Shown here: positions 2,360 through 14,626 of the stretch, piece after piece
Layout of the letters: each line of letters opens with the position of its first letter
Numbering within the stretch: the first letter of the stretch is position 1
IMG/VR virus record: IMGVR_UViG_3300022602_000024
Coordinates: 124,001 to 188,000 of that record
Length of the DNA stretch: 64,000 nucleotides
Direction: 5' to 3' (one strand)
Notes under the pieces: generated by a model
The model's input: only the letters and a program-made list of their open reading frames with translations
The model's database searches: none
What the model was told of the DNA's origin: nothing
Translations under genes and position numbers: made by a program

Positions 2360-4312
2360 CTATTTTTTATAAAGTGCTCGTAATACCTGTTTTAACAGGT
2401 GTTGCACAGTGGGATCAGATGCAGGCAAATTGGATTTGGTTTCCATACTGTAAGCAATATCATTCCACTCTTTGTTTTCTATGGTATTCAATGATCCATT
2501 TGAATTGGCAGAGTTGATTGCTTTCAATCCTGCAATGGTAATGGGCACTATTTGATAAGTGGCAAAGCGCCCGCCTACGGTTCTGTTAATTCTCATGCCT
2601 GCTAATCCTGTTTTGGCTTTTGCAGCAAATTCTTGTTTAACAGCATCTCCAACTGCAACAGGTACGATTTTGACATCTGTTTGTTTAAGTCGACGCTCCG
2701 ACAGATAGTAGTTCAATGCAGTAGTCATTTTGCTATCAAATGCAGCCAACCCAACATTCAATACTGGACTACCTTTGGTACGCAGATAATTTACCAATGC
2801 ACTGGAATCAGCTGGATTTACTGGTCGTTGGTCTTGTGTTATTTTTGCTAATTTTGTCTTGTATTCTTGCACATAAGCAGCAGGATCACTGGCAATGATC
2901 ATGGCACGAACAAAACGTCCCACTGCATTTTTAATGCCCTGCAGGTCCGCCAAGTAGTTGCCGCCAGCATGACGGAAACTGATATACTTGCCGTTGTTGC
3001 TGATACTGGCAGTATGTGCACGGGATACATTGTTGGCAAAGTCGGCTAATTTTTTAATATCAATGGTTGTAGCCTGTGCAGGACGCCCAAACACATCAGT
3101 CTTTTTCTTTTTGACCTTGACATCATTCTCCCAGTTTCCACCTGATAAATCTCGAAACACACTACGAGCATAGTCATTGCCTTCACGACCAAAGTATTTG
3201 AGCACATACTCGTCGCCTAAGAATACTGCCAGTTTAAGTACATCTAACTTTTGTGGGATACTGACATTGATGTGTAACCCTGTACTGTCATTTGTGTATA
3301 GGCCCATTTGTTGTGCAAGGCCATAAAATCGGTTTAATGCGGTCATAGCATCCAAGGCCGGCAATGGGGGACTGACAATTTCTGCAGCAGAATCTTCTTC
3401 ATTGTCAGGCGATAAACTACCATCAGGCTCAATATACCAGTCAGTGAGGTTTTTTGCTTTCTGATGATAACTATGGAACACCTGAACTGTGCTTTCCATA
3501 GCAGTAGTCACTGCTGGTTGTAGTACTGCAGCAGCATCTTCGTAACTGCCCCCATCATCTTCATCATCGTAGTAGTCATCACTTTCATAATCAGTTAATC
3601 TCAATTGATCCCAGACTGTGGATGGATCATAGGTGAAGTATTGACTGGTATGCACATCAACCCGGCCGTTGCCAGTTAGCCAGATCAAGAAGCCTTTCCA
3701 TGAAGTGCCTGCGGCAGCCATAGAACGCATACGTACACCTAGTTGTTCTAACTCATTGTTACTGTTTTTTATGTATAGCAAATAACCAACCATTCGTGCA
3801 AATTTCAGTTGATCTGACAATTTTTTACTGGCAAAACTGAAACTGCGATCATCATCTGCGCGAATACGTTTGACAGCAAGATCGGAATATTTTTTCTGTT
3901 GTGTTGGGGTCAGTTTGTTATACAGTTCAATAACACCAGGCAAGATACCGTCTTTGAAAGCTGGATATGCTGCGGTCGCAGTATCGAATCCTTTGAGTGG
4001 TTGCTTGAATCGAAATACAGAATCAAACCACTCGGGAGTCAGATCAATATCGGCCTGGCGACCACCAATTCGTTCATCCCACACATTGTTCTGATACAAG
4101 GCGTCATCTGTTTGATCTGTGGTATAAGCGGGCTTTTCTCCAGGTTCTTCAGCAGGAGTACCTTTGACAGTAGCCTCGGGCACACATACTTCAAATTCAA
4201 ATCCAACTAACACGCCAGCGGCATGTCCTTGCTCTACTGCTTGTGCAAAGGAAGTAGGGTCCATACGGACTTCATCTAATTCGGGTTGGTGGGCAAATTC
4301 TGTAATCTTCAT
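2360..4312 (-). CDS. Putative amidoligase (COOH-NH2 ligase type 2) with capsid-targeting-like leader
   Basis: Motifs VGFEFE, WYIEPDGSL, AEIVSPP, TNDSTGLHINVS; N-terminus MKITEFA. Confidence 0.75.
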   Translation of the reverse strand: MKITEFAHQPELDEVRMDPTSFAQAVEQGHAAGVLVGFEFEVCVPEATVKGTPAEEPGEKPAYTTDQTDDALYQNNVWDERIGGRQADIDLTPEWFDSVFRFKQPLKGFDTATAAYPAFKDGILPGVIELYNKLTPTQQKKYSDLAVKRIRADDDRSFSFASKKLSDQLKFARMVGYLLYIKNSNNELEQLGVRMRSMAAAGTSWKGFLIWLTGNGRVDVHTSQYFTYDPSTVWDQLRLTDYESDDYYDDEDDGGSYEDAAAVLQPAVTTAMESTVQVFHSYHQKAKNLTDWYIEPDGSLSPDNEEDSAAEIVSPPLPALDAMTALNRFYGLAQQMGLYTNDSTGLHINVSIPQKLDVLKLAVFLGDEYVLKYFGREGNDYARSVFRDLSGGNWENDVKVKKKKTDVFGRPAQATTIDIKKLADFANNVSRAHTASISNNGKYISFRHAGGNYLADLQGIKNAVGRFVRAMIIASDPAAYVQEYKTKLAKITQDQRPVNPADSSALVNYLRTKGSPVLNVGLAAFDSKMTTALNYYLSERRLKQTDVKIVPVAVGDAVKQEFAAKAKTGLAGMRINRTVGGRFATYQIVPITIAGLKAINSANSNGSLNTIENKEWNDIAYSMETKSNLPASDPTVQHLLKQVLRALYKK

Positions 4313-4318
4313 AATATG

Positions 4319-4332
4319 TATTTATATAAATA
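4319..4332 (-). promoter_or_regulatory. T4-late-type promoter TATAAATA (palindromic, present on both strands)
   Basis: tatttatataaata 7 bp upstream of the amidoligase ATG. Confidence 0.6.
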
Positions 4333-4336
4333 TCTA

Positions 4337-4446
4337 GTGCCGTTGCAATACGGATAGATGAAGATTTGAAAAACCTGGGGACTTTCCGTATCTTGCCCCT
4401 GGGCAACAACGAATTGGCAGGCGAGTTTCATTAATCATCGCGGCAC
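4337..4446 (-). ncRNA. Candidate structured RNA, family not recognised
   Basis: Outer stem GTGCCG/CGGCAC (4337-42 / 4441-46), inner ATACGGA/TCCGTAT (4348-54 / 4385-91), hairpin TTGCCC/GGGCAA (4393-4406). Confidence 0.45.
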
Positions 4447-4452
4447 ACTGTT

Positions 4453-6417
4453 TCATAAATTAATCTGCGGTGATTTACCAACCCAGCGTGAATCTCTAAT
4501 AATGGTTCCTACTTTAAAGTAGTTATCATCTACTTTGCGTACACCCATAGTGATCCAATTGTCATTACGGGTATCAGTAAATGCATATCCAGTACCATTG
4601 GGTTTGTCTTTAAAATATCTTAGTCCGCGATTCAACATGGCTGCACAGGCTTCCATCAATTGTTCAACCGTCATTCTGGAGCCTCTATTCAATTTGATTT
4701 GATCAAAAAAGTGCTTGGTAAACTCTAATTTAATACCCTTGGCATGGGCAAAGTGTTGTGTAGCTGTTGTCACTAGTTGTAGTTTGCGCATCAGTTCTTC
4801 GGTATAATAGGGATCAACTTCCCAGTCACTGTGTTCGTGAATCTTTTTAGCCTTGCCGGCTTTCATGTTGGCCAACCAATGTGCCATGCGTTGTTTTTCG
4901 CCTGTACTGTGTTTGGCAACATTTCTTAATGTACTTACGCTGGCTTTGGTATTAACGCCTGAACGTTTAGCAAGTCCTTTGCGTCCGGGATGTTTACCAT
5001 CAGCAAAGTTTTCTGCCACACCTTGCTTAACGAATTGAACGTTTAATTTGGCATTCTTCCACAACGGATTCTTAGGATCCATTCTTTGTTGTAGCAACCA
5101 TATAGCGGATACTCTGTGTGCCCCATCTTCAAACTTGCCGTTTAACACTATTATTGGATCGAGTTGGGCTAATGACTCTGGATGTTTTTTAAAATACTCA
5201 GCATACTCTATTGCCTTTTCAGTTACGTTCCAACTGTGGTAATCTTTAGCGTCCCAATCATCAACTACATTGTTATAGTAAGGCACACCGGGTATAGATG
5301 ATATAATCTGGCCTACAGTCATTTTGCGAGTTGTTATCTTTGCATCGGACGCAAATGGTTTAGGCTTACCAGAACTTGGTCCCGGTTGTGGGACACCATC
5401 GGCAAAGTTTTCCCATACATTTTTACCCGGCTTGTGCTTGTCCCAAAAGCCAGCACCAGCATCAGTCTGTTGACCACTGCGGCGAATTTTATATCCTTTG
5501 CTCTTTACGTAGTCATACATTGTTTTAGCAATACCTTGACTACGATAGCGTTCGTCAACTTCCAAGTCCTGTGGTAATAATTCATCACCATCAAAGGCAA
5601 ATAATACATGACCTAACTCACGACCATTACTACTTGCAGTAACATACATTACTTGGTTATCATAATCGTCATCATCAACGTATTCATCATCTTTTTGTAT
5701 TTCAATATTGATATCTATACCATTAAATGCTTCTTCTTCTAAACTTTCGCCACGATAAGGACGTACCCAAGAGAAACGTGTGCTGGCCGGAATCCACTTT
5801 AATCCTAAACCGCGATTGCCTTTGGCTGGATCAGTGTCAATCAACAACCAGTCTTTTTCATCGCTAAACTTTACTTCGTGTTGCCGACGAATAATACGCA
5901 CAATCTTGCCTGTGCTTTCAATCTTGGCCATCATGGCAGGCTCTGTGTCTTCATCTAGGAATGTGCTGGCAATCTTACGACACAGATTTTTTAACTTTTC
6001 ATTCTTTGTTTCTACTACGCGGAAACGTGCTGAACTGGTATCTTGTGTGGGATCAATGTATCCACAGTATACACGTTTAATACCTACTCCGTGTAAAAAT
6101 CGACTGCAACTTTCGTCATGGCGATCATCCATTGCTTCACTGCAAGGACTCAATGTTGTAATGACTGTAGATCCTGGGGGAACAGGACCGTTTTCACTAA
6201 CGTAAGCATTGACAGCTACACGTTCAGCGTGTATGCGCTTGCCCTCTGAATCGGGCAAGTTAATACCGCAAACTTCTACTCCGTTGGGATCTAACACACA
6301 AGCTGCTACGCAACCATATGTGTCTTCATCACGTTCTTGTCCAGAAATGACCATTTCGCATAACCTGGCCAGTATGCGATCTAAATGTTCTGTACTGAGT
6401 ATTTCTTTAGTCTGCAT
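4453..6417 (-). CDS. Modular polyprotein: Zn-dependent deaminase + small domain + GNAT + ParB-like + basic module + FTKHF C-terminal domain
   Basis: HAE..TTLSPC..C deaminase motif; RYRSQGIAKTMY GNAT motif A; PIIVLNGKFEDGAHR ParB-like; junctions VWENFADG and GVAENFADG. Confidence 0.7.
   Translation of the reverse strand: MQTKEILSTEHLDRILARLCEMVISGQERDEDTYGCVAACVLDPNGVEVCGINLPDSEGKRIHAERVAVNAYVSENGPVPPGSTVITTLSPCSEAMDDRHDESCSRFLHGVGIKRVYCGYIDPTQDTSSARFRVVETKNEKLKNLCRKIASTFLDEDTEPAMMAKIESTGKIVRIIRRQHEVKFSDEKDWLLIDTDPAKGNRGLGLKWIPASTRFSWVRPYRGESLEEEAFNGIDINIEIQKDDEYVDDDDYDNQVMYVTASSNGRELGHVLFAFDGDELLPQDLEVDERYRSQGIAKTMYDYVKSKGYKIRRSGQQTDAGAGFWDKHKPGKNVWENFADGVPQPGPSSGKPKPFASDAKITTRKMTVGQIISSIPGVPYYNNVVDDWDAKDYHSWNVTEKAIEYAEYFKKHPESLAQLDPIIVLNGKFEDGAHRVSAIWLLQQRMDPKNPLWKNAKLNVQFVKQGVAENFADGKHPGRKGLAKRSGVNTKASVSTLRNVAKHSTGEKQRMAHWLANMKAGKAKKIHEHSDWEVDPYYTEELMRKLQLVTTATQHFAHAKGIKLEFTKHFFDQIKLNRGSRMTVEQLMEACAAMLNRGLRYFKDKPNGTGYAFTDTRNDNWITMGVRKVDDNYFKVGTIIRDSRWVGKSPQINL
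5011..5025 (-). repeat. GVAE linker repeat, variant CAAGGTGTGGCAGAA
   Basis: In frame within 4453..6417; one synonymous change from the core repeat. Confidence 0.75.
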
Positions 6418-6790
6418 GCTTCAACCCAAAGTATTCAGGATTGGCTTGAGCAAAGTCACGCATGATGATGCCGGCATTGCTGTTGGCTTCGTTTTCTTCT
6501 GGGGTACCAGTTTCGCCAGCACCGTCGTACAACTTGCCCTCTAAGTCTTGCTTGTAGTGTGTGAGTTCGTGTGCTAGTGTTCTTAATACATCAACAGGAT
6601 GACGACCAGCAACCACCAGTTCAATAGACTTGGTGTTGGGATTATATCCGCCAAAACTGGTGTCTACAGGGCGTGCTAATAATTTAATAGGAGGCAATTT
6701 TTCCAGCTCTAATCGTTCGGCTACCCAAGGGGCAAACCGATGAACAAACTGCTTGGCCATGCCTTCAATTAAAAAATCACTTGCTCTCAT
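6407..6790 (-). CDS. HEXXH zincin-like metallopeptidase domain protein with leader MRASDFLIE
   Basis: LRTLAHELTHYKQ motif. Confidence 0.6.
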   Translation of the reverse strand: MRASDFLIEGMAKQFVHRFAPWVAERLELEKLPPIKLLARPVDTSFGGYNPNTKSIELVVAGRHPVDVLRTLAHELTHYKQDLEGKLYDGAGETGTPEENEANSNAGIIMRDFAQANPEYFGLKHAD

Positions 6791-7142
6791 TCAAAATCCA
6801 CGTCTGTGCCGATTCTAACAATTGTTGTAATTCTTCTACACTCTCACAATGCCATTTACGCAATGACTTGTTGATACGGCTATTTGGATCATGTGCAGTT
6901 TTTGCACTAGTACGACTCTTTTTCATGCCCTTCATACGTGCGCAGAAACTGGCACGACGTTTGGCAGCTTTTGATCCTTTTTTCAGTTTACTGGGTTTAG
7001 TAGTTACAGCAGTCTGTAGTTTGCTACCAGGATGTTCTTTACGATAACTGGCAACACCTTTTTTGTTCAGTCCGCCGTTTTTGTTCTTGCCTGATTTTTT
7101 CTGCCAGGCTGCAGTTTCTGTGACAATTTCTTCAAATTTCAT
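6777..7142 (-). CDS. Basic phage protein with leader MKFEEIVTE
   Basis: Start moved to 7142 for ATGA overlap with the dps stop; Lys/Arg-rich AAWQKKSGKN..RRASFCARM. Confidence 0.65.
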   Translation of the reverse strand: MKFEEIVTETAAWQKKSGKNKNGGLNKKGVASYRKEHPGSKLQTAVTTKPSKLKKGSKAAKRRASFCARMKGMKKSRTSAKTAHDPNSRINKSLRKWHCESVEELQQLLESAQTWILNESK

Positions 7143-7573
7143 TTTGATGTGGCCCTTAACATCCATGCGTGTTTACGGAACGCGTCCATACGTTCTGCTA
7201 AGAAGTTGCTAAATCCATGCTCGCCCTCGGCTTCGGCAATATCATATACACGCTTTAAAATCAATACCATATTCTCAGCATCTTGTAATAGTTCAGCAAC
7301 CATTTGTTCACCAGGTACAACTTCGGTAGCATCATCAATGCCGCTCAACACACTGAAGCGACTGTTACTACCAGGAGCATAACTGCCTAGGGCACGAATC
7401 TTTTCTGCAAACTCATCCACGGTACCATATACTTCAGTGTAGATGGTTTCAAACAATGCGTGTAGTTCTTGGAAGTTGATGCCTTCTACATTCCAATGAA
7501 AGAACGCAGCTTTCAAATAAAATGTAAATTGGCTAGCAAAGGCTATCTTTGCGGCTTTGGCTAATTCGTTCAT
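7139..7573 (-). CDS. dps: Dps / DNA-binding ferritin-like protein
   Basis: FHWNVEG..LHALFE..DEFAEKIR..HAWML motifs; start at 7573 by ATGA coupling. Confidence 0.9.
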   Translation of the reverse strand: MNELAKAAKIAFASQFTFYLKAAFFHWNVEGINFQELHALFETIYTEVYGTVDEFAEKIRALGSYAPGSNSRFSVLSGIDDATEVVPGEQMVAELLQDAENMVLILKRVYDIAEAEGEHGFSNFLAERMDAFRKHAWMLRATSK

Positions 7574-9687
7574 AGGTCGTATCCTGCTGCTTTCATTTCC
7601 TGTAGTCGCCATTGTATCTCAAGGCGTTCTAATCTTTGTTGTTGTGATTCGTTTAGGCCTGGTGTTCCGGGAATAGCACTTGAGCTATCGTTGGGCACAC
7701 TAGCGGCTGCTGGGTATTCGTTTAGGCTTTCGTGTGCCCATTGATCGTGCTCACTGCTCCATTGTCCTTGCCCATCCGACCATGAGTCTTCGTCGATCCC
7801 ATTTTTAAATGGCCAACCACTGGCATCTTCTTCGGCATATTGCTTGTGCACTTCACGAGCCTTCTTTTCGTCGGCATCACGGCTTTGTACTACTTTAGGC
7901 TGTGGTGCTACGGGTTCTTTTTCAAACTCTTTACGCATTTGCGACAAACTGGTATTGGGTTTCTTAGCCGCAGGCTTTGCAGTTTGGAATCCTAGTATTT
8001 CGTCAACTTGACCTTTGGTGCTATCTTCTTCAGTTTTTTTCTTTAAGAAGTTAGGAACCGTGGTATTTCGATCAAGTCTATCAACTGTGGTTTTAGTTAT
8101 GCTTGGCTTTATTTTTGTGGCAATTTTTCGATCGTTCCAATTGACGTCAGCATCCTTGGGATTCATTAATTCTATATCACGGTCGTTTTTAGATAAAGAG
8201 TTTCTATCATCTGGCCAACGTTGACCTTCCGCCACACCTTGCTGTTTACCGCGAACAAAATAATACACATCAACGTCTCTGTTGGCGGCATTTAGTTTGT
8301 TGGCGTAATCTTCTGCCTCTTGATCATTATTGAATGTTTTTACTACTTCGGTTTCGTGGTCTCTTTCGCCATTTGGATACAATGTAGTATCTTGGCGATA
8401 AACGATCCATGACATAGTAGAGCCTTCCGCCACACCTTTCTTTTTCAATGTATCAGGATGTGCTAGACCTTTTTTGACTTTTTCTGCCTGACTCATTTTA
8501 TCAACTTGTTTGCCAAGTTTGGGATCAACATCGTGCCAAGTCTGTGGATGTGGCTTTTTGTCGCCTTCCGCCACACCTTGCTTCTTCATATACTTCTTAC
8601 GCAATTTTAAGTCTGCTGGCGTTGCTTTTCTGATTAAATTCAAATATTTGTTTACTGGAATTTCTTTTATCTCAATGGGTTTGATGCCTTCTACTCCGGG
8701 AATAGAATGAAACTCTCTGCTATTGCCACCTTGAACAAACTGTGGTTTTCCATCTGGACCCTTGAATGGTAATTTATGTAGATACACATATTCACCTTTT
8801 CTAATCTGGCCACTGAACAAAACCATTTGTGGATCATTGGGGAACATACCTGTGTCTGAACCTGGTGTAGTCAGACCCATGGCTATAGCAACTTTTGGAT
8901 CTGAAGTAGCGTAGATAGCATTTTGATTACTACCAGCGGCACCACCTGTATCTACAGATTGTCTTGGTTCTAACATAGTAATCTTTTGTCTTGACCCATG
9001 CCAAAGATAGGTATTAATAACTTTGCCTTCCGCCACACCTTGCTGTCCAATTTGAAGATATTCAGTGGGCCAATCAAACACTATGTTATCGTATGCATCA
9101 AACACTGTCTCGAGGTAATCTCTTAACTCGTCAGGTATACGCTCTTTACTCCATGCTTTGGGCATTTCAGAATCATCGCCGTGCCATGCTTTCCAAGCCA
9201 TTGGGGTCCAATAGTCTAAGGCATCACTATCCAAATTGCCGGCTTTTTGCAATGCTGGAGCAACAGACTTAAACCCTTCTCTGTTGGCCCAAGTAGCAAA
9301 GATTTTGTGATAAGGCTTGTTATTTGCCACTGCCCATTGATATAGATCTCGTACATCAGTTGGTGGCATTTGTGTATCAGGAATACGTGGTTCTTTTTGC
9401 ATCCTGCCCATCATGGTATCAAATCGCTTGTCGCCAGTTGCCTCCGCCACACCCTCTGACTTGGGCTTTTTGTGATGCTTCTTCATGTTGATGGCAATAG
9501 CAGCCTGTTGTGCGGCATTGGCAGCTTCTTCTACTGACTCATTGGGCACACAGTTATTGACTCTGACACCACCTTTGATCTTGGTGCCTTCTTTGTGCTT
9601 GCCAGTCCAGCACTTGGCATCCAAGCGTTGTTTAATCGCCCGGGCTTCTTTAACAGTTAGTGCATCAACAATATCATTTAAAAGCAT
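7570..9687 (-). CDS. Modular polyprotein with five GVAE(G) linkers, including an ADP-ribosyltransferase-like module
   Basis: Linkers at 9453, 9039, 8577, 8436, 8238; module 2 has LWHGS..AIYATSD..E pattern. Confidence 0.75.
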   Translation of the reverse strand: MLLNDIVDALTVKEARAIKQRLDAKCWTGKHKEGTKIKGGVRVNNCVPNESVEEAANAAQQAAIAINMKKHHKKPKSEGVAEATGDKRFDTMMGRMQKEPRIPDTQMPPTDVRDLYQWAVANNKPYHKIFATWANREGFKSVAPALQKAGNLDSDALDYWTPMAWKAWHGDDSEMPKAWSKERIPDELRDYLETVFDAYDNIVFDWPTEYLQIGQQGVAEGKVINTYLWHGSRQKITMLEPRQSVDTGGAAGSNQNAIYATSDPKVAIAMGLTTPGSDTGMFPNDPQMVLFSGQIRKGEYVYLHKLPFKGPDGKPQFVQGGNSREFHSIPGVEGIKPIEIKEIPVNKYLNLIRKATPADLKLRKKYMKKQGVAEGDKKPHPQTWHDVDPKLGKQVDKMSQAEKVKKGLAHPDTLKKKGVAEGSTMSWIVYRQDTTLYPNGERDHETEVVKTFNNDQEAEDYANKLNAANRDVDVYYFVRGKQQGVAEGQRWPDDRNSLSKNDRDIELMNPKDADVNWNDRKIATKIKPSITKTTVDRLDRNTTVPNFLKKKTEEDSTKGQVDEILGFQTAKPAAKKPNTSLSQMRKEFEKEPVAPQPKVVQSRDADEKKAREVHKQYAEEDASGWPFKNGIDEDSWSDGQGQWSSEHDQWAHESLNEYPAAASVPNDSSSAIPGTPGLNESQQQRLERLEIQWRLQEMKAAGYDL
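8225..9453 (-). repeat. Five dispersed in-frame copies of GGTGTGGCGGA(A/G)G
   Basis: Plus-strand ccttccgccacacc at 8225, 8423, 8564, 9026 and cctccgccacacc at 9441; spacings 198, 141, 462, 414 nt. Confidence 0.9.
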
Positions 9688-10412
9688 TACTTTTGTCCTA
9701 ACTTGGCCTGTTTAATAGCATTAGCAACTTGTGTTACTTGTGCAGGATTACCGGTAGTAATCAAATCTTCGATAGACTTGCCCAACGCACCTGTGGTCTT
9801 TTTAGCAGCTTGATCCATGCCTTGTCCTGTTGCAGGATTTGCTTGTGGATTATTGGCCATTTTAACTGCACTTTGTGCGGCCTGTGAGGGACTTGTAGTC
9901 ATATTCACACCAGCGGACTTTAATTTGTTTATATTTTGTTGTGCGTTTTGCACTTCTTTGTTCATTTTGGCAGCATCAATGGGATTACCTGTTGTTCCGG
10001 TTGCTCCAGTGGGCATGATGTTTTCTTCAACATACTTTGACCACTCGTTCATTAGTTCTTCTTCTAGACTTGCATCTTCAGCACATCCGCCTACACCTTG
10101 GCCGGGTTTGGGAGTACCTTTATCGGTGCCCTTCCAGTAACCGCCAAACTTAGAACCACTGGCATGATGTTCAGCATCAGCCATTGAATCTTCTTCTACA
10201 TCTGCGTTGATGTTTTTTTCATCGGGCACTACTCTGGCTATATTGGCCAGAGATATAGCTCTATTGTCTGCAGCTTTTTGTACAATTGCTTTGGCTTGTG
10301 CAGCGGCTGCAGGGGATGGTTGGTCTATTGTGGCTGGCTTACCAAAGTTGCCTTCATTGCCTTCATCCAAACGTTTGAAGATATTTAATATATCTGCGAA
10401 ATTGTTATCCAT
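9687..10412 (-). CDS. Hypothetical low-complexity (A/Q/N-rich) protein, possible head cargo
   Basis: Coupled to both neighbours; leader MDNNFADILNIFKRLDE. Confidence 0.6.
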   Translation of the reverse strand: MDNNFADILNIFKRLDEGNEGNFGKPATIDQPSPAAAAQAKAIVQKAADNRAISLANIARVVPDEKNINADVEEDSMADAEHHASGSKFGGYWKGTDKGTPKPGQGVGGCAEDASLEEELMNEWSKYVEENIMPTGATGTTGNPIDAAKMNKEVQNAQQNINKLKSAGVNMTTSPSQAAQSAVKMANNPQANPATGQGMDQAAKKTTGALGKSIEDLITTGNPAQVTQVANAIKQAKLGQK

Positions 10413-12367
10413 TATTTTACCTTCTTAACGTTGGTTAGTCTATTGCCGTAGCCACTGAGTTTCTTTTGCAGTGCTTTACGAGTAAATGCTTCGTCGCCAA
10501 ACTCACTTACCACACTAGCAATACTGCTGGAACTAGTTGCACCTGCATCTTCTTTAACTGTTTGTTTGCTTTCACGGAATCCGCGACGCTGACTCAAAAG
10601 ATCTTCATAATCAGAATCATCTTCTTCGTGATCTGGACGTGCTACACCAGTGCCACCACATGATCTGCAACTGGTTCCTTCCCATTGGCCTTCGCCAGTG
10701 CCACGGCAATTATAACACTCGTGATCATCGTCATCCTCGTGTGAGCCTTCTGCCATGCCGCCAAATCCTGTCTTGGCTTTGTTGTACATTTTTTCAACAT
10801 TGGCATCACTAGCAGGACCAACATTTGGCGCTTGGGTCTTCTGCTGAATTTCTTGATCTTTATTGTATTTTTTACCGGAGCTAGTTGTTAGCATTTGTGA
10901 TAACTTCTTAATTAGATCAATGCCAAACTTTGCAAATAAAAATTCTGCGGCCCATTCTAATCCATTATCTACTAGGGTTTCTTTCAACTCATCTTTAGCT
11001 ACATCAGCTACTGCGCCGGCAACCCCGGCATGAGCAGCTCCTGCTACTGCTGCATGACCAGCTAGTCCCACACCTAAAGCCATAACAACAAGATCTTTCC
11101 ATTGTGCGTTCATAAATTTGATCTGTGCAGGGGTTGCTTTACCTTGTCTTTTCAAATTTAAAATTTGAAGCATTTGCCATGTTTCTTGTGCTTCATTTTG
11201 GCCTATAGTGAATAGTTTGGTTAGAAAACTAGGAACGATATTGGCAAATTTAGTTATTCCATTTAATGAGAAACCTTCTGCTACATCTTGTGGTAGTGCA
11301 TAAGTTTGTGCAAAAATATCTTTTTTAACAGCACCATAATCATTGGCACCGTGGCGAACAATGTAGTCGTTGCCTGCGGTATATTGTAAGTCTCCCCAGC
11401 TGGTATGTAGTACACCATCGTGGTCAGCTAACTTGGCTAACTTGGGAATTTTTTTGGGAGTAGCGGTACCGTCGCCGTTGTCATCATATAGTTTGGCAAA
11501 CTTAGCTGGTTCCACTGGATATTGCTCACCTTTGGGCCCAGTAATAATATGTGCCTGAGCAGAATGTTTCATCGGACCTTCTAGTGTTTTGACTGTACCT
11601 GGTTGTCCTGGTACTGTGTATTTGACAGGGGTGGCCTTTTTATAAGTTTGGAATGCGCCTTGTTTGAACCAAGCATCATTGATCGCTGGAGAATCGCCCT
11701 CCGCCACACCTTGCTTAACTGTTTTATAAGCACTCTGTAAAACAAACATATATTCTTTATCTGTGATATCCGGTAGTATACCTTCAACCGCGGTACTAAA
11801 AAAGTCATCACCTGCTATCATATTCATAGCATGTATCATACCCAATTCATCAACATTTTTTTGTTTTGCTACTTGTATAGCAATTTCCAATAGTTTTCTT
11901 AATCTACGACTTCTTTCATTATCGCCACCGTCGTTATTTGGAGGAACAAACTCATTTAAATTGCCCTCCGCCACACCTTCGGGTTCTCTAATAGCAGGAT
12001 TGTCAATCTGTTGAGCAACTGCTGTTAGGCTTTCATTGCTATTGGTAATCTTTTTGTACATCCATGCTTCAAGTGGAGTTCCTGATTTCACATGTTGATA
12101 AATCTTCTTAGCATCCTGTACAATGGCTTTTAATTCACCCAATGCCATGCCGTCTAATTGTTCGTCTTCTGACATGTCCTTATTATAATGCTTTTTAACA
12201 TCATTAGCAAATTGTTTTTTGGTGGCCTTTACTATACCGCTAAAACGCTTGTCTCCGCGCTTGTAGTTGCCGGCTTTGTCAGCCGCACTTGCATCTGCGC
12301 CTGCGGCAGTTTTGTAACGTGCTAGTGCATCGTTGCTTAATTCTGTGACAAATTCTGTAGGTTTCAT
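10412..12367 (-). CDS. Modular polyprotein with GVAEG/DVAEG/GMAEG linkers and a DnaJ-type Zn finger
   Basis: Leader MKPTEFVTE; linkers at 11977, 11710, 11287, 10759; CYNCRGTG..CRSCGGTG. Confidence 0.75.
   Translation of the reverse strand: MKPTEFVTELSNDALARYKTAAGADASAADKAGNYKRGDKRFSGIVKATKKQFANDVKKHYNKDMSEDEQLDGMALGELKAIVQDAKKIYQHVKSGTPLEAWMYKKITNSNESLTAVAQQIDNPAIREPEGVAEGNLNEFVPPNNDGGDNERSRRLRKLLEIAIQVAKQKNVDELGMIHAMNMIAGDDFFSTAVEGILPDITDKEYMFVLQSAYKTVKQGVAEGDSPAINDAWFKQGAFQTYKKATPVKYTVPGQPGTVKTLEGPMKHSAQAHIITGPKGEQYPVEPAKFAKLYDDNGDGTATPKKIPKLAKLADHDGVLHTSWGDLQYTAGNDYIVRHGANDYGAVKKDIFAQTYALPQDVAEGFSLNGITKFANIVPSFLTKLFTIGQNEAQETWQMLQILNLKRQGKATPAQIKFMNAQWKDLVVMALGVGLAGHAAVAGAAHAGVAGAVADVAKDELKETLVDNGLEWAAEFLFAKFGIDLIKKLSQMLTTSSGKKYNKDQEIQQKTQAPNVGPASDANVEKMYNKAKTGFGGMAEGSHEDDDDHECYNCRGTGEGQWEGTSCRSCGGTGVARPDHEEDDSDYEDLLSQRRGFRESKQTVKEDAGATSSSSIASVVSEFGDEAFTRKALQKKLSGYGNRLTNVKKVK
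11697..11977 (-). repeat. Two in-frame copies of GGTGTGGCGGAGGG
   Basis: Plus-strand ccctccgccacacc at 11697 and 11964, 267 nt apart. Confidence 0.9.
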
Positions 12368-12391
12368 GTAATTTTTCCGTATTAACTATAT

Positions 12392-12667
12392 TTATTCGGA
12401 TATAACAAAGTCGGTTGCGGAAGCGGCACCATTGACTTTGATGTTTCGAACAGTAATAGATCCATGTCGATTCACGTGTTCTATTCGTACTGAGTGCAGT
12501 CCAGGTTCTAAATTTACTATGATATTTTCTTGTATATAAACTTCGGGACCAGGCCAAGTAAAGTCCCGCTCAGTAAGCAAATCATCATCCACATATACTC
12601 GGTAAGTTGGATGCCCCGTACTCCAGGATGCATAAACATCTACAAGTATAGAGCATTCTTGGATCAT
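12392..12667 (-). CDS. Hypothetical beta-rich protein
   Basis: ORF track; 4-nt overlap with upstream gene. Confidence 0.6.
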   Translation of the reverse strand: MIQECSILVDVYASWSTGHPTYRVYVDDDLLTERDFTWPGPEVYIQENIIVNLEPGLHSVRIEHVNRHGSITVRNIKVNGAASATDFVISE

Positions 12668-13752
12668 TTTAAGCCTCTACCAATGCCACCTTTGATGGGT
12701 TGTTGTCCAGTTTTTGTGGGTTTGCGTCCTGTTAGTCCCAAGGCTTTCATTTCTTTGCCCAAGGTATCGCCTGTTACATCGTTTTGATCACCAGCAGTGG
12801 CCATAACATAACGAGGATCGTTTCCACCTCGAACAACACCTACCCCGCCCATTTCAGCAACACGCCCATAGCGTTCTTCACCTTCAGACGGTTTCCAAGA
12901 AAAGCGATTTTCGTGAGCCATGCGCTTTTGTACTAGTGTATTGATAATTCTGTCTAATTGGTCTTTGGGTACATGTTGTGCTACTAGTTTGGTCTTGCTG
13001 TTTCGATTCATGGGTTCGTAATACAAATCAACAAAAGCAGGATCTATAATACGTACTTCATTTAGTCCAGCGGCTTTGACAGTTTTAGGAAGTTTAACAG
13101 GTCTTGGTGCTTCAATTGGGGCAGCAGGAGCAAGTTTATCGGTCATTAGTTTTTCGGCTTCTACTGTATACTTGCCAAACAAATCTTTAATAATCGCTTG
13201 ACGTGTTTTTTCATCTGCAGCCACATACTGCGCACGCAACTCAGTACCTGATCGCATGGGTTGTCCTAGTACATCAAAATCAAATGTAGGAACAGTCATA
13301 ATATAAGCATGACGATTCATGCCTTCTGTTTCCTTCATGTTACCCGGCATCTTTTGCAAGTAAGCAGGTGTGCCGTCTTTTTTGGTAAAGGATTTGAAGC
13401 GTGGATCTTCGGCCATGTCTTTTTCGCTCACTGCAAAGATCACCACAGTATTGGCAGGATCAGCAATGCTTAAATTACCGCCAGTAATAACAGTTTCAAT
13501 TTGATATGGGCTTGTTGCTTGTATGATACGGTCAGAAGGAACCCCTGTTAGTTGCATAAAGTAAGCCTTTTCTGCAAAACTAAAGGGGCTCTTTGGGGGT
13601 TCTACTTTATTACTAGTAGCAATATAGACGTTGTTGCGTCCGTATTTTGTGGTTAGATAGTTATATACCGCGTGGTGACCTTTGTGAAAAGGCTGAAAAC
13701 GCCCAGGGTATATAACCAACAGTTGTGGTTCTGATAATTCCGTAATATACAT
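12664..13752 (-). CDS. Cytidyltransferase-like (HIGH-motif) nucleotidyltransferase with leader MYITELSE
   Basis: IYPGRFQPFHKGH motif; SPFSFAEK; RSGTELR. Confidence 0.75.
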   Translation of the reverse strand: MYITELSEPQLLVIYPGRFQPFHKGHHAVYNYLTTKYGRNNVYIATSNKVEPPKSPFSFAEKAYFMQLTGVPSDRIIQATSPYQIETVITGGNLSIADPANTVVIFAVSEKDMAEDPRFKSFTKKDGTPAYLQKMPGNMKETEGMNRHAYIMTVPTFDFDVLGQPMRSGTELRAQYVAADEKTRQAIIKDLFGKYTVEAEKLMTDKLAPAAPIEAPRPVKLPKTVKAAGLNEVRIIDPAFVDLYYEPMNRNSKTKLVAQHVPKDQLDRIINTLVQKRMAHENRFSWKPSEGEERYGRVAEMGGVGVVRGGNDPRYVMATAGDQNDVTGDTLGKEMKALGLTGRKPTKTGQQPIKGGIGRGLK

Positions 13753-13781: not shown

Positions 13782-14165
13782 TCATATATTTTTTAGCAGC
13801 CACATATAAAGAGGAGTCTCAAATGTTAGTCTGTATATTTCTATAATATTATTGGTACCTATGCTGGCAGTATGATTATTTGATATTTTGTTTAAGATAG
13901 GACTTAAATAATATCCATTTATCTCTATATTTTCTGTTAATAACAAATTATCATCGTCTGCATCTTTATTGGGGAAAACAATATCAACGGTGTGAGATCC
14001 CGCCGGTAAAATATTATCAAAAGTCACTAAAATTTTCCCCCCAGTGATCCCGGATGTATTGCCGGTAACAACGGTTTTTTTATTTAATTTAATAATATAT
14101 TTAGGTGGTATATTCTTAAAGATGCTGACTAAAGTTATTTTAAAATATAATTTTTCTGTCAACAT
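13782..14165 (-). CDS. Hypothetical protein, paralog-like to 14177..14626
   Basis: Both begin ML(T/D)..EKL.FKI and end F.(T/S)P.Y.WLL..I. Confidence 0.55.
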   Translation of the reverse strand: MLTEKLYFKITLVSIFKNIPPKYIIKLNKKTVVTGNTSGITGGKILVTFDNILPAGSHTVDIVFPNKDADDDNLLLTENIEINGYYLSPILNKISNNHTASIGTNNIIEIYRLTFETPLYMWLLKNI

Positions 14166-14176
14166 TTACAGGTTTA

Positions 14177-14626
14177 TTAAATAGTTTCAAGTAACCAAAT
14201 ATAAAAAGGCGAATTAAAAGGAAAAGTCCATGCTCCGTTCCAACCCAAATCGATACAATTATTTAATACGGGACGTTCAGGATCATCACCTGTAAAAATA
14301 CTATTGCTATGTAGTAAGGTTCCAACATCTATTTCGTCGATTTCGACACTCTTGATATTAAGTACCATATCTTTAAGTATCTCGGTTTTGTCTTCGCTTT
14401 GTACAGTATCGCTGTTGTCTTTGTTCTCTAATCGAATTTTTAAAACAACGGGACCCTCTTCTACGGTATAATCAAACTCTTCGTAGTATGTTTCTTCACT
14501 GGCACCTGTAATGGCCTTGTGATCAACTATTACAGAGTCGTTGATTAATATACTATAGACGGGCACTTTTTTCCAATAAGTGCCCGCTATGCCGATCTTA
14601 AAATGAAGTTTTTCGGTATCTAACAT
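14177..14626 (-). CDS. Hypothetical protein
   Basis: ORF track; C-terminal FPFNSPFYIWLLETI. Confidence 0.6.
   Translation of the reverse strand: MLDTEKLHFKIGIAGTYWKKVPVYSILINDSVIVDHKAITGASEETYYEEFDYTVEEGPVVLKIRLENKDNSDTVQSEDKTEILKDMVLNIKSVEIDEIDVGTLLHSNSIFTGDDPERPVLNNCIDLGWNGAWTFPFNSPFYIWLLETI

Follow-up and report, generated by a model that had tools for sequence, protein, structure and literature searches.

In bacteriophage T4, internal proteins are brought into the head by a short N-terminal leader, the capsid-targeting sequence (CTS), and the first 10 residues of IPIII are enough for packaging, with residues 4 and 7 serving in targeting and residues 8 and 10 in processing (PMC9026906). 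In phiKZ, 201phi2-1 and SPN3US, head proteins are cut after S/A/G-x-E by a gp21-like prohead protease (gp175; PMC9026906, PMC5694885, PMC7411985), and a separate class of phage products, the polyvalent proteins, consists of strings of 2-15 effector domains for which packaging into the capsid and injection have been predicted (PMC5512222). Here we examine a block of ten consecutive genes, labelled A to J, on the minus strand at positions 2360-13752 of a 64,000-nucleotide window (bases 124001-188000) of the IMG/VR virus record IMGVR_UViG_3300022602_000024. The block is probably a head cargo locus of the T4 type, in which leaders would target proteins to the prohead, an S77 protease would cleave them, linkers would divide polyproteins into injected modules, and the DNA of the linkers would allow exchange of cassettes. 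Window positions are given below with the prefix W, and positions in the whole record are marked as genome positions.

Source genome and its relatives

The source record is a single IMG/VR virus sequence of 354,429 bp, estimated to be 98% complete, and it is a freshwater jumbo phage of ~350 kb belonging to the PA5oct/Rak2-like capsid lineage. Its nearest cultured relatives by identity of the major capsid protein (MCP) are Vibrio phage 2.275.O (70%), Pseudomonas phage PA5oct (67%) and jumbo phages of the Rak2/121Q/BF type (65%). Many studies of freshwater and lake metagenomes, spanning 2016 to 2023, have recovered the sequence again. Megablast and tblastn searches of GenBank phages found no near relatives of the block, the sole match being 53 amino acids (aa) in a Synechococcus phage. 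Gene calling across the genome yielded 416 genes with heuristically assigned start codons, and internal Met positions (n = 1697) were used as a chance control. An independent relative, G002 (348.7 kb, 100% complete), was absent from the training of the position-specific scoring matrix (PSSM) described below.

A leader motif at the starts of block genes

Leaders of 8-17 residues with the core M-[KR]-x-x-[ED]-[FIL]-[IVL]-x-E stand at the N-termini of eight of the ten consecutive minus-strand genes in W2360-13752. The first-pass annotation of the window had drawn attention to these N-termini, and all those that it quoted are present on the minus strand at the expected places, including that of a superoxide dismutase (SOD) gene elsewhere in the window. 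A regular expression for the leader matched six of the 1697 internal Met positions (0.35%), which corresponds to ~1.5 expected matches among the 416 N-termini; 21 were observed, six of them in the block. With a 9-column PSSM at a threshold of at least 10 bits, no internal Met position scored (0/1697) as against 21 N-terminal candidates, and the genome-wide profile scan that had been recommended for these leaders thus places them far beyond chance. The same PSSM at 12 bits or more identified 11 N-termini in G002, compared with 2 of 1481 internal Met positions, examples being MRFTEIITE, MRAKEFITE, MRATEFIIE and MRAIEFVTE. That the pattern arose by chance or as an annotation artefact is scarcely credible: start codons were called heuristically and leaders B and G fit the core consensus poorly, but the internal-Met controls, the replication in G002 and the concentration of the motif GVAE in polyproteins B, F and H (8/9) all speak against it.

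Across the whole genome ~25 genes bear leaders. The matches outside the seed set comprise an 824-aa paralogue of amidoligase A (genome 198108-200582, leader MRFKEIKPLAEQQLDE), a protein of 300 aa (MLINEVITE), a 5'-nucleotidase that starts MKSFEFE, a lysozyme-like protein of the Glyco_hydro_19 family (MFLHDILNE), a further cluster located at genome 259.8-265.5 kb, a gene starting MKITEIIAE at genome 344 kb, and a pair of small genes flanked by those for the portal and the protease. Equal frequency on replication genes had been named beforehand as a sign against packaging; the genome-wide scan found the motif on no recognisable replication gene.

The leaders end in (L/I/V)-x-E, namely VTE in H and D, LIE in C, LSE in J, LDE in A and G, and VKE in F. 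Beyond the P3 and P1 cleavage positions, K/R2, E/D5 and F/I/L6 are also conserved in leaders and are missing from the internal linkers described below, which argues for a role beyond marking a cut site. Such a role could in principle lie in translation initiation, in an N-degron or Clp adaptor tag, or in membrane or secretion targeting, with the likeness to T4 coincidental. M-K/R is frequent at positions 1-2 of highly expressed genes, the phage group encodes Clp-like proteins according to the PA5oct annotation, and several leader genes have a promoter-like NTAAATA abutting the ATG. An initiation context would nevertheless leave the acidic-hydrophobic-hydrophobic-x-Glu core unexplained, the leaders do not have the character of hydrophobic signal peptides, G002 has the same motif at an internal position before a module, and the motif co-occurs with a T4-type protease and sits on the core protein in the gp67 position. 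We therefore consider a function of this other kind very unlikely.

Head module and prohead protease

A search for the prohead protease, suggested in the first-pass annotation, found an enzyme of the Peptidase_S77 (gp21) type within a head module in T4 order. The enzyme (genome 16741-17379) matches PF03420 with 89 bits, shares 37% identity with T4 gp21, and has retained the His and Ser motifs of the catalytic site (equivalents of H85 and S140); the gene order is portal (20)-67-68-21-22-23, as in T4. Leader-like N-termini are present on the gp67-position gene and on the gene for an acidic protein of 360 aa at the gp68 position, and the MCP begins MTQALLE↓S...EALLE↓G (arrows mark predicted cuts). 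The T4 leader MKTYQEFIAE, whose role is described in PMC9026906, was confirmed in the T4 record, which gives MKTYQEFIAE↓A for IPII/III, MELITELFDE↓D for Alt, MAKINELLRE↓S for gp24, MLKEQLIAE↓A for gp22 and MNEPQLLIE↓T for gp21. Leaders of the present genome follow the same pattern, as in MKITEIIAE↓A, MKINEIISE↓S, MYITELSE↓P, MKPTEFVTE↓L and MRASDFLIE↓G.

Of 15 related contigs searched, nine encode the S77 protease (10 of 16 when the source genome, G000, is itself counted), as does every tested contig that holds a homologous head module. The six negative contigs are small fragments or have no MCP homologue either (G007, G010, G011 and G013), and the negatives of these four are uninformative because the MCP homologue is also missing.

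Leader-like N-termini on the gp67- and gp68-position genes, and the same type of N-terminus on T4 core proteins, would also suit an alternative in which leader proteins enter the prohead, are cut, act as scaffold or core in the manner of gp22, gp67 and gp68, and are degraded and expelled before DNA is packaged. The block proteins are, however, folded enzymes (amidoligase, deaminase, GNAT, nucleotidyltransferase and SOD) rather than coiled-coil or acidic proteins, the precise and conserved sites between modules suggest release of intact modules over degradation, and the SOD homologue of PA5oct was detected in mature virions. A scaffolding fate is accordingly improbable for these proteins.

Polyproteins and the interchange of leaders and linkers

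Genes B (W4453-6417, 654 aa), F (W7570-9687, 705 aa) and H (W10412-12367, 651 aa), all on the minus strand, encode polyproteins of four, six and five modules, respectively, parted by linkers of the form Q-G-V-A-E↓G. The proteome as a whole contains the motif GVAE nine times, with eight of these occurrences in B, F and H, and all six occurrences of GVAEG are in F and H. Behind its leader MQTKEILSTE (W6388-6417), B consists of a cytidine/dCMP deaminase, a GNAT module, a ParB-like module (DGxHR) and a basic C-terminal module, with candidate sites at SLEE↓E before GNAT (~W5746-5754), VWE↓NFADG (W5401-5427) and QGVAE↓NFADG (W5002-5028). In F, the leader MLLNDIVDALTVKE (W9646-9687) is followed by GVAE linkers at W9433-9459, 9019-9045, 8557-8583, 8416-8442 and 8218-8244. 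The leader of H, MKPTEFVTE (W12341-12367), precedes linkers at W11957-11983, 11690-11716, 11267-11293 (DVAE↓G) and 10739-10765 (GMAE↓G). Cutting at these linkers is predicted to yield modules of 47-218 aa with widely differing isoelectric points (pI).

The same modules occur behind leaders in some proteins and behind linkers in others. The PGDYG module follows QGVAE↓G in the present genome and stands alone behind MKINELE↓NG in three IMG/VR contigs (L002, L003 and L005). DUF6321 stands alone behind MKFEEIVTE↓ here, is internal in a 441-aa protein of G002, where it still starts MKIEELIT, and in T4-like cyanophages begins right after ...VNE↓G or ...QNE↓S. A ParB-like module in contig L018 is flanked by GMAE↓G and GVAE↓G, and a GNAT module in L008 and L009 is preceded by [IV]AE↓E. 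Environmental homologues of module F3 are found behind a leader (MKIADLE↓, MRLKEIS), behind a fusion of leader and linker (MRAQEFTQGVAE↓G, MRILEIIE↓SREHYNWRQQGVAE↓G, MLIRDLLSE↓QRGVTE↓G), or behind another module (ParB) and a linker (KQGISE↓G). Of the evidence internal to the sequences, this interchange of leader and linker before the same modules speaks most strongly for a shared logic of processing.

Polyproteins of this kind could alternatively be classic polyvalent proteins, processed by the zincin C or not at all, with QGVAEG acting as a flexible linker and recombination scar. Processing by a metallopeptidase (MPTase) domain has been proposed for polyvalent proteins by Iyer et al. 2017 (PMC5512222), the block does encode an HExxH protein (C), and relatives carry the zincin module as the C-terminal portion of larger proteins. 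Yet no MPTase-PolyVal match was found, the block proteins having no Pfam match to MPTase-PolyVal or LPD families at E up to 0.1-1, and the linker shows the hydrophobic-x-Glu↓small pattern of the leaders and of the MCP propeptide. Leader and linker moreover interchange or fuse directly, as in MRAQEFTQGVAE↓G and MRINEILVEQGVAEG, and a mere flexible linker needs no invariant Glu. We regard this alternative as unlikely, and favour cleavage of a T4-type head cargo by the prohead protease.

Several further sequence features accompany the junctions. E↓NFADG is shared by the B junctions at W5002-5028 and W5401-5427, gene G starts MDNNFAD, and environmental homologues show QGVEE↓NFADGK; the basic module after E↓NFADG in B is related to DUF6321, and we take E↓NFADG as a second conserved type of junction that precedes basic DUF6321-like modules. 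Polyproteins in contigs L006-L019 that start with a leaderless nucleotidyltransferase (e.g. L007:9389-10522 and L018:9047-11236) share a C-terminal tail, ES[AV]DYL[DE]E[KN], which is missing from the proteins of the window; by analogy with T4 Alt, which is processed at both ends, this tail could be a C-terminal targeting or processing signal. A recurrent small module, in which a Lys/Arg run is followed by an acidic run rich in Gly, Tyr and Ser (KKRKKKS...GYYGGSGESGEGGGD), lies directly after leaders or linkers in many relatives (P0013, P0019, L017:9263-11236 and L018:9047-11236) and may be a spacer or DNA-binding element. In T4-like cyanophages, S-P4 gp060 (L180:1184-2773) and P-SSM2 gp114 (L181:1946-2761) are highly basic proteins of several modules, rich in Cys, with DUF6321 at the end and x-x-E↓G junctions, and their genes lie between tail and terminase genes; these proteins may be a marine counterpart of the cargo polyproteins. 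The label 'structural protein T4-GC0119' that cyanophage DUF6321 proteins bear was set aside as annotation only, the source text calling it hypothetical and the supplements being silent.

Conservation of linker DNA and probable exchange of modules

Short conserved coding motifs serve as recombination junctions in T-even phages, in the CTS-flanked internal protein loci and in the His-box and Gly-rich motifs of tail-fibre adhesins. Conservation of the present linkers as DNA, and a role for them as cassette junctions, go beyond what the first-pass annotation had observed; when the linker motif was looked for in the literature, no relevant publication came to light. Of the eight GVA linker sites, seven have GGT-GTG-GCG exactly and share the identical core GGTGTGGCGGA(A/G)GG, which occurs nowhere else in the genome. 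Since GCG accounts for 5.8% of Ala codons in the genome and GTG for 18.5% of Val codons, the probability of this choice is ~0.004 per site.

At least 120 IMG/VR stretches contain the 18-mer CAAGGTGTGGCGGAAGGC, and as many as four copies lie within 4.5 kb. Among the matches listed, 100 of 101 are in frame as QGVAEG inside long open reading frames (ORFs; median 548 aa), and the 60-aa flanks form 78 clusters from 93 sequences upstream and 81 clusters from 95 downstream, so that one DNA junction joins ~80 unrelated pairs of modules. Junction ORFs that start with a leader include MRATEFIIEGVAEG and MRINEILVEQGVAEG.

Population variation was examined by aligning contigs of four lake metagenomes to W7570-12367. 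A contig variant present in two samples (sides of 93 and 255 nt) skips W8243-9088, with 43 unmatched letters between its sides and a net change of -801 nt, which is the exact span from linker F220 (W9019) to linker F487 (W8218). Residues 221-487, and with them modules F3-F5, are lost in frame, a three-module variant both of whose ends coincide with linkers. Bounded by two linkers, module F5 makes up a unitig of 212 nt with zero differences and a depth of ~400x, compared with ~5x for the neighbouring modules, which points to an identical cassette in many genomic contexts. Long loose contig ends also branch at linker positions. Joints at linkers with sides of ~20 nt were dismissed as artefacts of the repeated linker.

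Between genomes, G009 has an MCP 94% identical to that of the source phage yet lacks nearly all modules of F and H, which implies rapid turnover of cargo, and G002, G006 and G008 each have single F or H modules placed in other proteins. Leaders D (W7116-7142) and H (W12341-12367) share 11 identical nucleotides, TTGTCACAGAA, which code for [FI]VTE, and this identity hints that leaders, like linkers, are possibly conserved as DNA.

We tentatively propose, at somewhat less than even chances, that the QGVAEG unit is a dual junction, which would provide 18-21 nt of dedicated homology for in-frame, integron-like exchange of cassettes within a clade of freshwater jumbo phages and, as protein, a prohead-protease site for modules that are packaged together, released and injected. 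Such a dual junction would be a previously undescribed route by which phages evolve and deliver their effector arsenals.

Evidence from PA5oct virions and points against the cargo interpretation

In the RefSeq record of PA5oct, 93 virion-associated proteins are noted as detected by electrospray ionisation tandem mass spectrometry (ESI-MS/MS; PMC7318152). The flagged proteins include gp333, the orthologue in the gp67 position (MKINDIITE↓G), and gp332 in the gp68 position, as well as the leader-like proteins gp246 (MKIKDILVE), gp135 and gp254. The PA5oct SOD homologue, gp223, is likewise flagged and has the same kind of N-terminal extension as the Fe/Mn SOD of the window (W51727-52272, minus strand). 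In the latter the extension is ~20 aa long and ends ...↓AKNRVELE↓Q (W52210-52272), a weaker and longer variant of the leader motif, and before the canonical start the extension ends in LLE↓A here, IAE↓A in PA5oct and LLE↓D in G002. Overall, four of eight annotated leader matches in PA5oct are positive by mass spectrometry against a baseline of 20%, numbers too few for statistics.

A number of observations weigh against the block being a processed and exchangeable head cargo. The leader-like PA5oct proteins gp213, gp103 and gp077 are not flagged, the PA5oct mass spectrometry list includes seven 'virion-unrelated enzymes' (PMC7318152), and no homologues of A-J were found in PA5oct or in any phage with a proteome. 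Within the block, genes E (Dps/ferritin, W7139-7573) and I (91 aa, W12392-12667) have no leader, and leader B, ending ILSTE, has no hydrophobic P3 and is an exception to (L/I/V)-x-E. Homologues of gene J in relatives are without a leader, these being N-terminal parts of linker polyproteins, and only 20 of the 53 junction ORFs with a complete 5' end have a recognisable leader by a crude start call. Recombination at linkers depends on one robust variant together with the depth and branching data, since the joints with ~20-nt sides are artefactual, and the related contigs could represent one jumbo-phage clade, in which case part of the DNA identity would possibly reflect shared ancestry.

Proposed mechanism and its significance

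From the motif statistics, the protease, the interchange of leaders and linkers, the conservation of linker DNA, the diversity of its flanks and the linker-to-linker variant, we infer a mechanism of targeting, cleavage, retention in the head, injection and recombination. By analogy with the T4 CTS, the leader would direct a protein into the scaffolding core of the prohead, where the gp21-type protease would cut at the hydrophobic-x-Glu of the leader. One leader would import the four to six modules of B, F or H, whose linkers would present the same protease site, and after maturation the modules would be free as separate proteins inside the DNA-filled head, to be delivered to the host together with the genome. 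The cargo set would comprise the amidoligase, deaminase, GNAT, ParB-like, zincin, DUF6321, DUF3990/ADP-ribosyltransferase (ART)-like, PGDYG and nucleotidyltransferase proteins of the block and, encoded elsewhere in the genome, SOD, the lysozyme-like protein and the 5'-nucleotidase; a plausible role for this set lies in early host takeover or counter-defence. Linker DNA, with an identical core of 15-18 nt and rare codons, would supply homology for gain, loss and exchange of modules, and a module inserted between two linkers would automatically become packaged, cleavable cargo. The head-packaging proposal of the first-pass annotation is favoured, at the level of sequence, by all the computational tests that could have contradicted it.

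If this mechanism holds, the capsid-targeting principle of T4 would extend beyond T-even phages as a delivery platform of general use, enlarged in distant jumbo phages to carry dozens of enzymes, and leader and linker motifs would allow injected proteins for early takeover and anti-defence to be predicted from the sequences of uncultured phages, in which they otherwise escape notice. The DNA-conserved linker would offer a concrete mechanism for rapid, cassette-like turnover of the arsenal, and the arrangement as a whole a natural design for packing several foreign proteins into a phage head from a single fusion gene.

Gene content of the block

Gene A (W2360-4312, minus strand as are all genes that follow) encodes a 650-aa amidoligase-domain protein with the leader MKITEFAHQPELDE at W4271-4312; the Amidoligase_2 match (PF12224) scores 29.6 bits against a gathering score of 22 and covers residues 254-351 only. 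In gene B, module B3 (W5011-5409) has no match to Pfam ParBc and is ParB-like by its DGxHR-like motif only; the related protein P0008 carries a bona fide PF02195 module. Gene C (W6407-6790, 127 aa) encodes a putative zincin (HELTH) with the leader MRASDFLIE at W6764-6790. Gene D (W6777-7142, 121 aa) is a basic DUF6321 protein (pI 10.6) with the leader MKFEEIVTE at W7116-7142 and starts at the second ATG of its ORF. Gene E, of the Dps/ferritin-like type, occupies W7139-7573.

Module F3 (W8566-9027) is DUF3990/ART-like and shows the motifs LWHGSR, IYATS and GEYVYLH. Its AlphaFold2 model (pLDDT 75.7) matches DUF3990 models in the AlphaFold database with E 1e-6 to 6e-8 and TM ~0.6; in the PDB the best matches are Arr, PARP16 and cholera toxin A1, which are weak (E >=0.07, TM ~0.4), and a profile search of F3 against PDB sequences gave nothing significant. 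On the basis of the model an ART-like activity is plausible. Gene G (W9687-10412, 241 aa) has a long leader, MDNNFADILNIFKRLDE, at W10362-10412. Among the modules of H are PGDYG (W11276-11698), a hydrophobic one rich in Ala and Gly, and a zinc finger of the DnaJ type (CxxCxGxG). Module H4 (W10748-11275) contains a long hydrophobic stretch rich in Ala, Gly and Val, MALGVGLAGHAAVAGAAHAGVAGAVADVA, possibly a segment that inserts into membranes, such as an ejection protein aiding the passage of DNA across the envelope would be expected to have.

The small gene I probably stands outside the leader system. The ORFs at W12392-12667, 13782-14165 and 14177-14626 are paralogue-like small ORFs without a leader, two of which end ...P[LF]Y[MI]WLL[KE][NT]I, and they sit directly upstream of, or within, the cargo block. 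Gene J (W12664-13752, 362 aa) encodes a nucleotidyltransferase (HxGH) with the leader MYITELSE at W13729-13752 and a possible internal site RVAE↓M at W12844-12870.

The enzyme identities given in the first-pass annotation stood for the most part. Amidoligase and SOD exceed their Pfam cut-offs, the latter with 37.9 bits for Sod_Fe_N (cut-off 27), whose domain begins at residue 22, and 70.8 bits for Sod_Fe_C (cut-off 20.9). The nucleotidyltransferase holds although its Pfam score of 20.3 is below the cut-off of 21, with a PHROG cytidyltransferase match and the HxGH motif. The putative metallopeptidase C retains its HExxH motif, with sub-threshold matches only (DUF6647 and Peptidase_M91). Deaminase (dCMP/cytidine), GNAT, ferritin/Dps and DUF6321 all score above Pfam cut-offs; the majority of the remaining modules either lack a family or match internal regions of large phage proteins. 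A gene for an Fe-S assembly protein of the IscA type (W51404-51730) overlaps the end of the SOD gene and forms, with Dps (W7139-7573) and SOD, a metal and oxidative-stress set.

Expression signals

The T4 late-promoter consensus TATAAATA lies at W4319-4326 on the minus strand, 6 nt upstream of the ATG of gene A. The element is rare, with 25 copies in the genome, of which 13 lie no more than 45 nt upstream of a gene; it precedes the portal gene and several structural-looking genes as well as gene A. NTAAATA-N5-7-ATG is found at 14 gene starts, four of which are leader genes. The NTAAATA gene starts are without a Shine-Dalgarno sequence (e.g. genome 18819, 201519, 310427, 312298, 330188 and 344417), and their arrangement suggests late-type promoters abutting the start codon and hence leaderless or near-leaderless late mRNAs. 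Together, TATAAATA and NTAAATA give a weak indication of late co-expression of the leader genes.

Comparison with known systems

Of the closest described systems, the T4 CTS of IPI/II/III and Alt with its protease gp21 (Mullaney and Black 1996; PMC9026906, PMC3012670) resembles the present one in having a leader of ~10 residues on unrelated proteins with a hydrophobic-x-Glu end, a gp21-type protease, a 20-67-68-21-22-23 module, and cargo that is hypervariable among close relatives. Some leaders form near-identical pairs, namely MKITEIIAE, MKINEIISE and MYITELSE here with MKTYQEFIAE, MAKINELLRE and MELITELFDE in T4. The source phage differs in belonging to a PA5oct/Rak2-like jumbo lineage rather than to Tevenvirus, in having ~25 leader genes instead of a handful, and in carrying large enzymes and polyproteins with internal cleavage-type linkers, which are missing in the T4 internal proteins and known here from sequence.

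The head, inner-body and ejection proteins of phiKZ, 201phi2-1 and SPN3US are similarly cut after Glu by a T4-like prohead protease, at several sites per protein and with a large mass of ejected protein. They belong to another phage lineage, have a small residue at P3 where the present sites have hydrophobic V/L/I/M, and show neither a repeated, DNA-conserved linker nor a CTS-like consensus leader. Polyvalent proteins (Iyer et al. 2017, PMC5512222) share with the block the presence of several unrelated effector domains in one phage polypeptide, the common themes of ParB-like, ART, GNAT, deaminase and peptidase domains, and extensive mosaicism. They differ in that their processing is ascribed to an MPTase zincin domain; here a short linker matches the prohead-protease site, the proteins start with a CTS-like leader, and conservation of the linker extends to its DNA. 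The junction motifs of T-even phages, finally, are alike in that short conserved coding motifs bound hypervariable, swappable segments, and differ in that here one 18-nt sequence doubles as a predicted protease site. The T4 CTS and polyvalent proteins are thus known systems, and the most original aspect of the present locus is the dual role of its linker as protein and as DNA.

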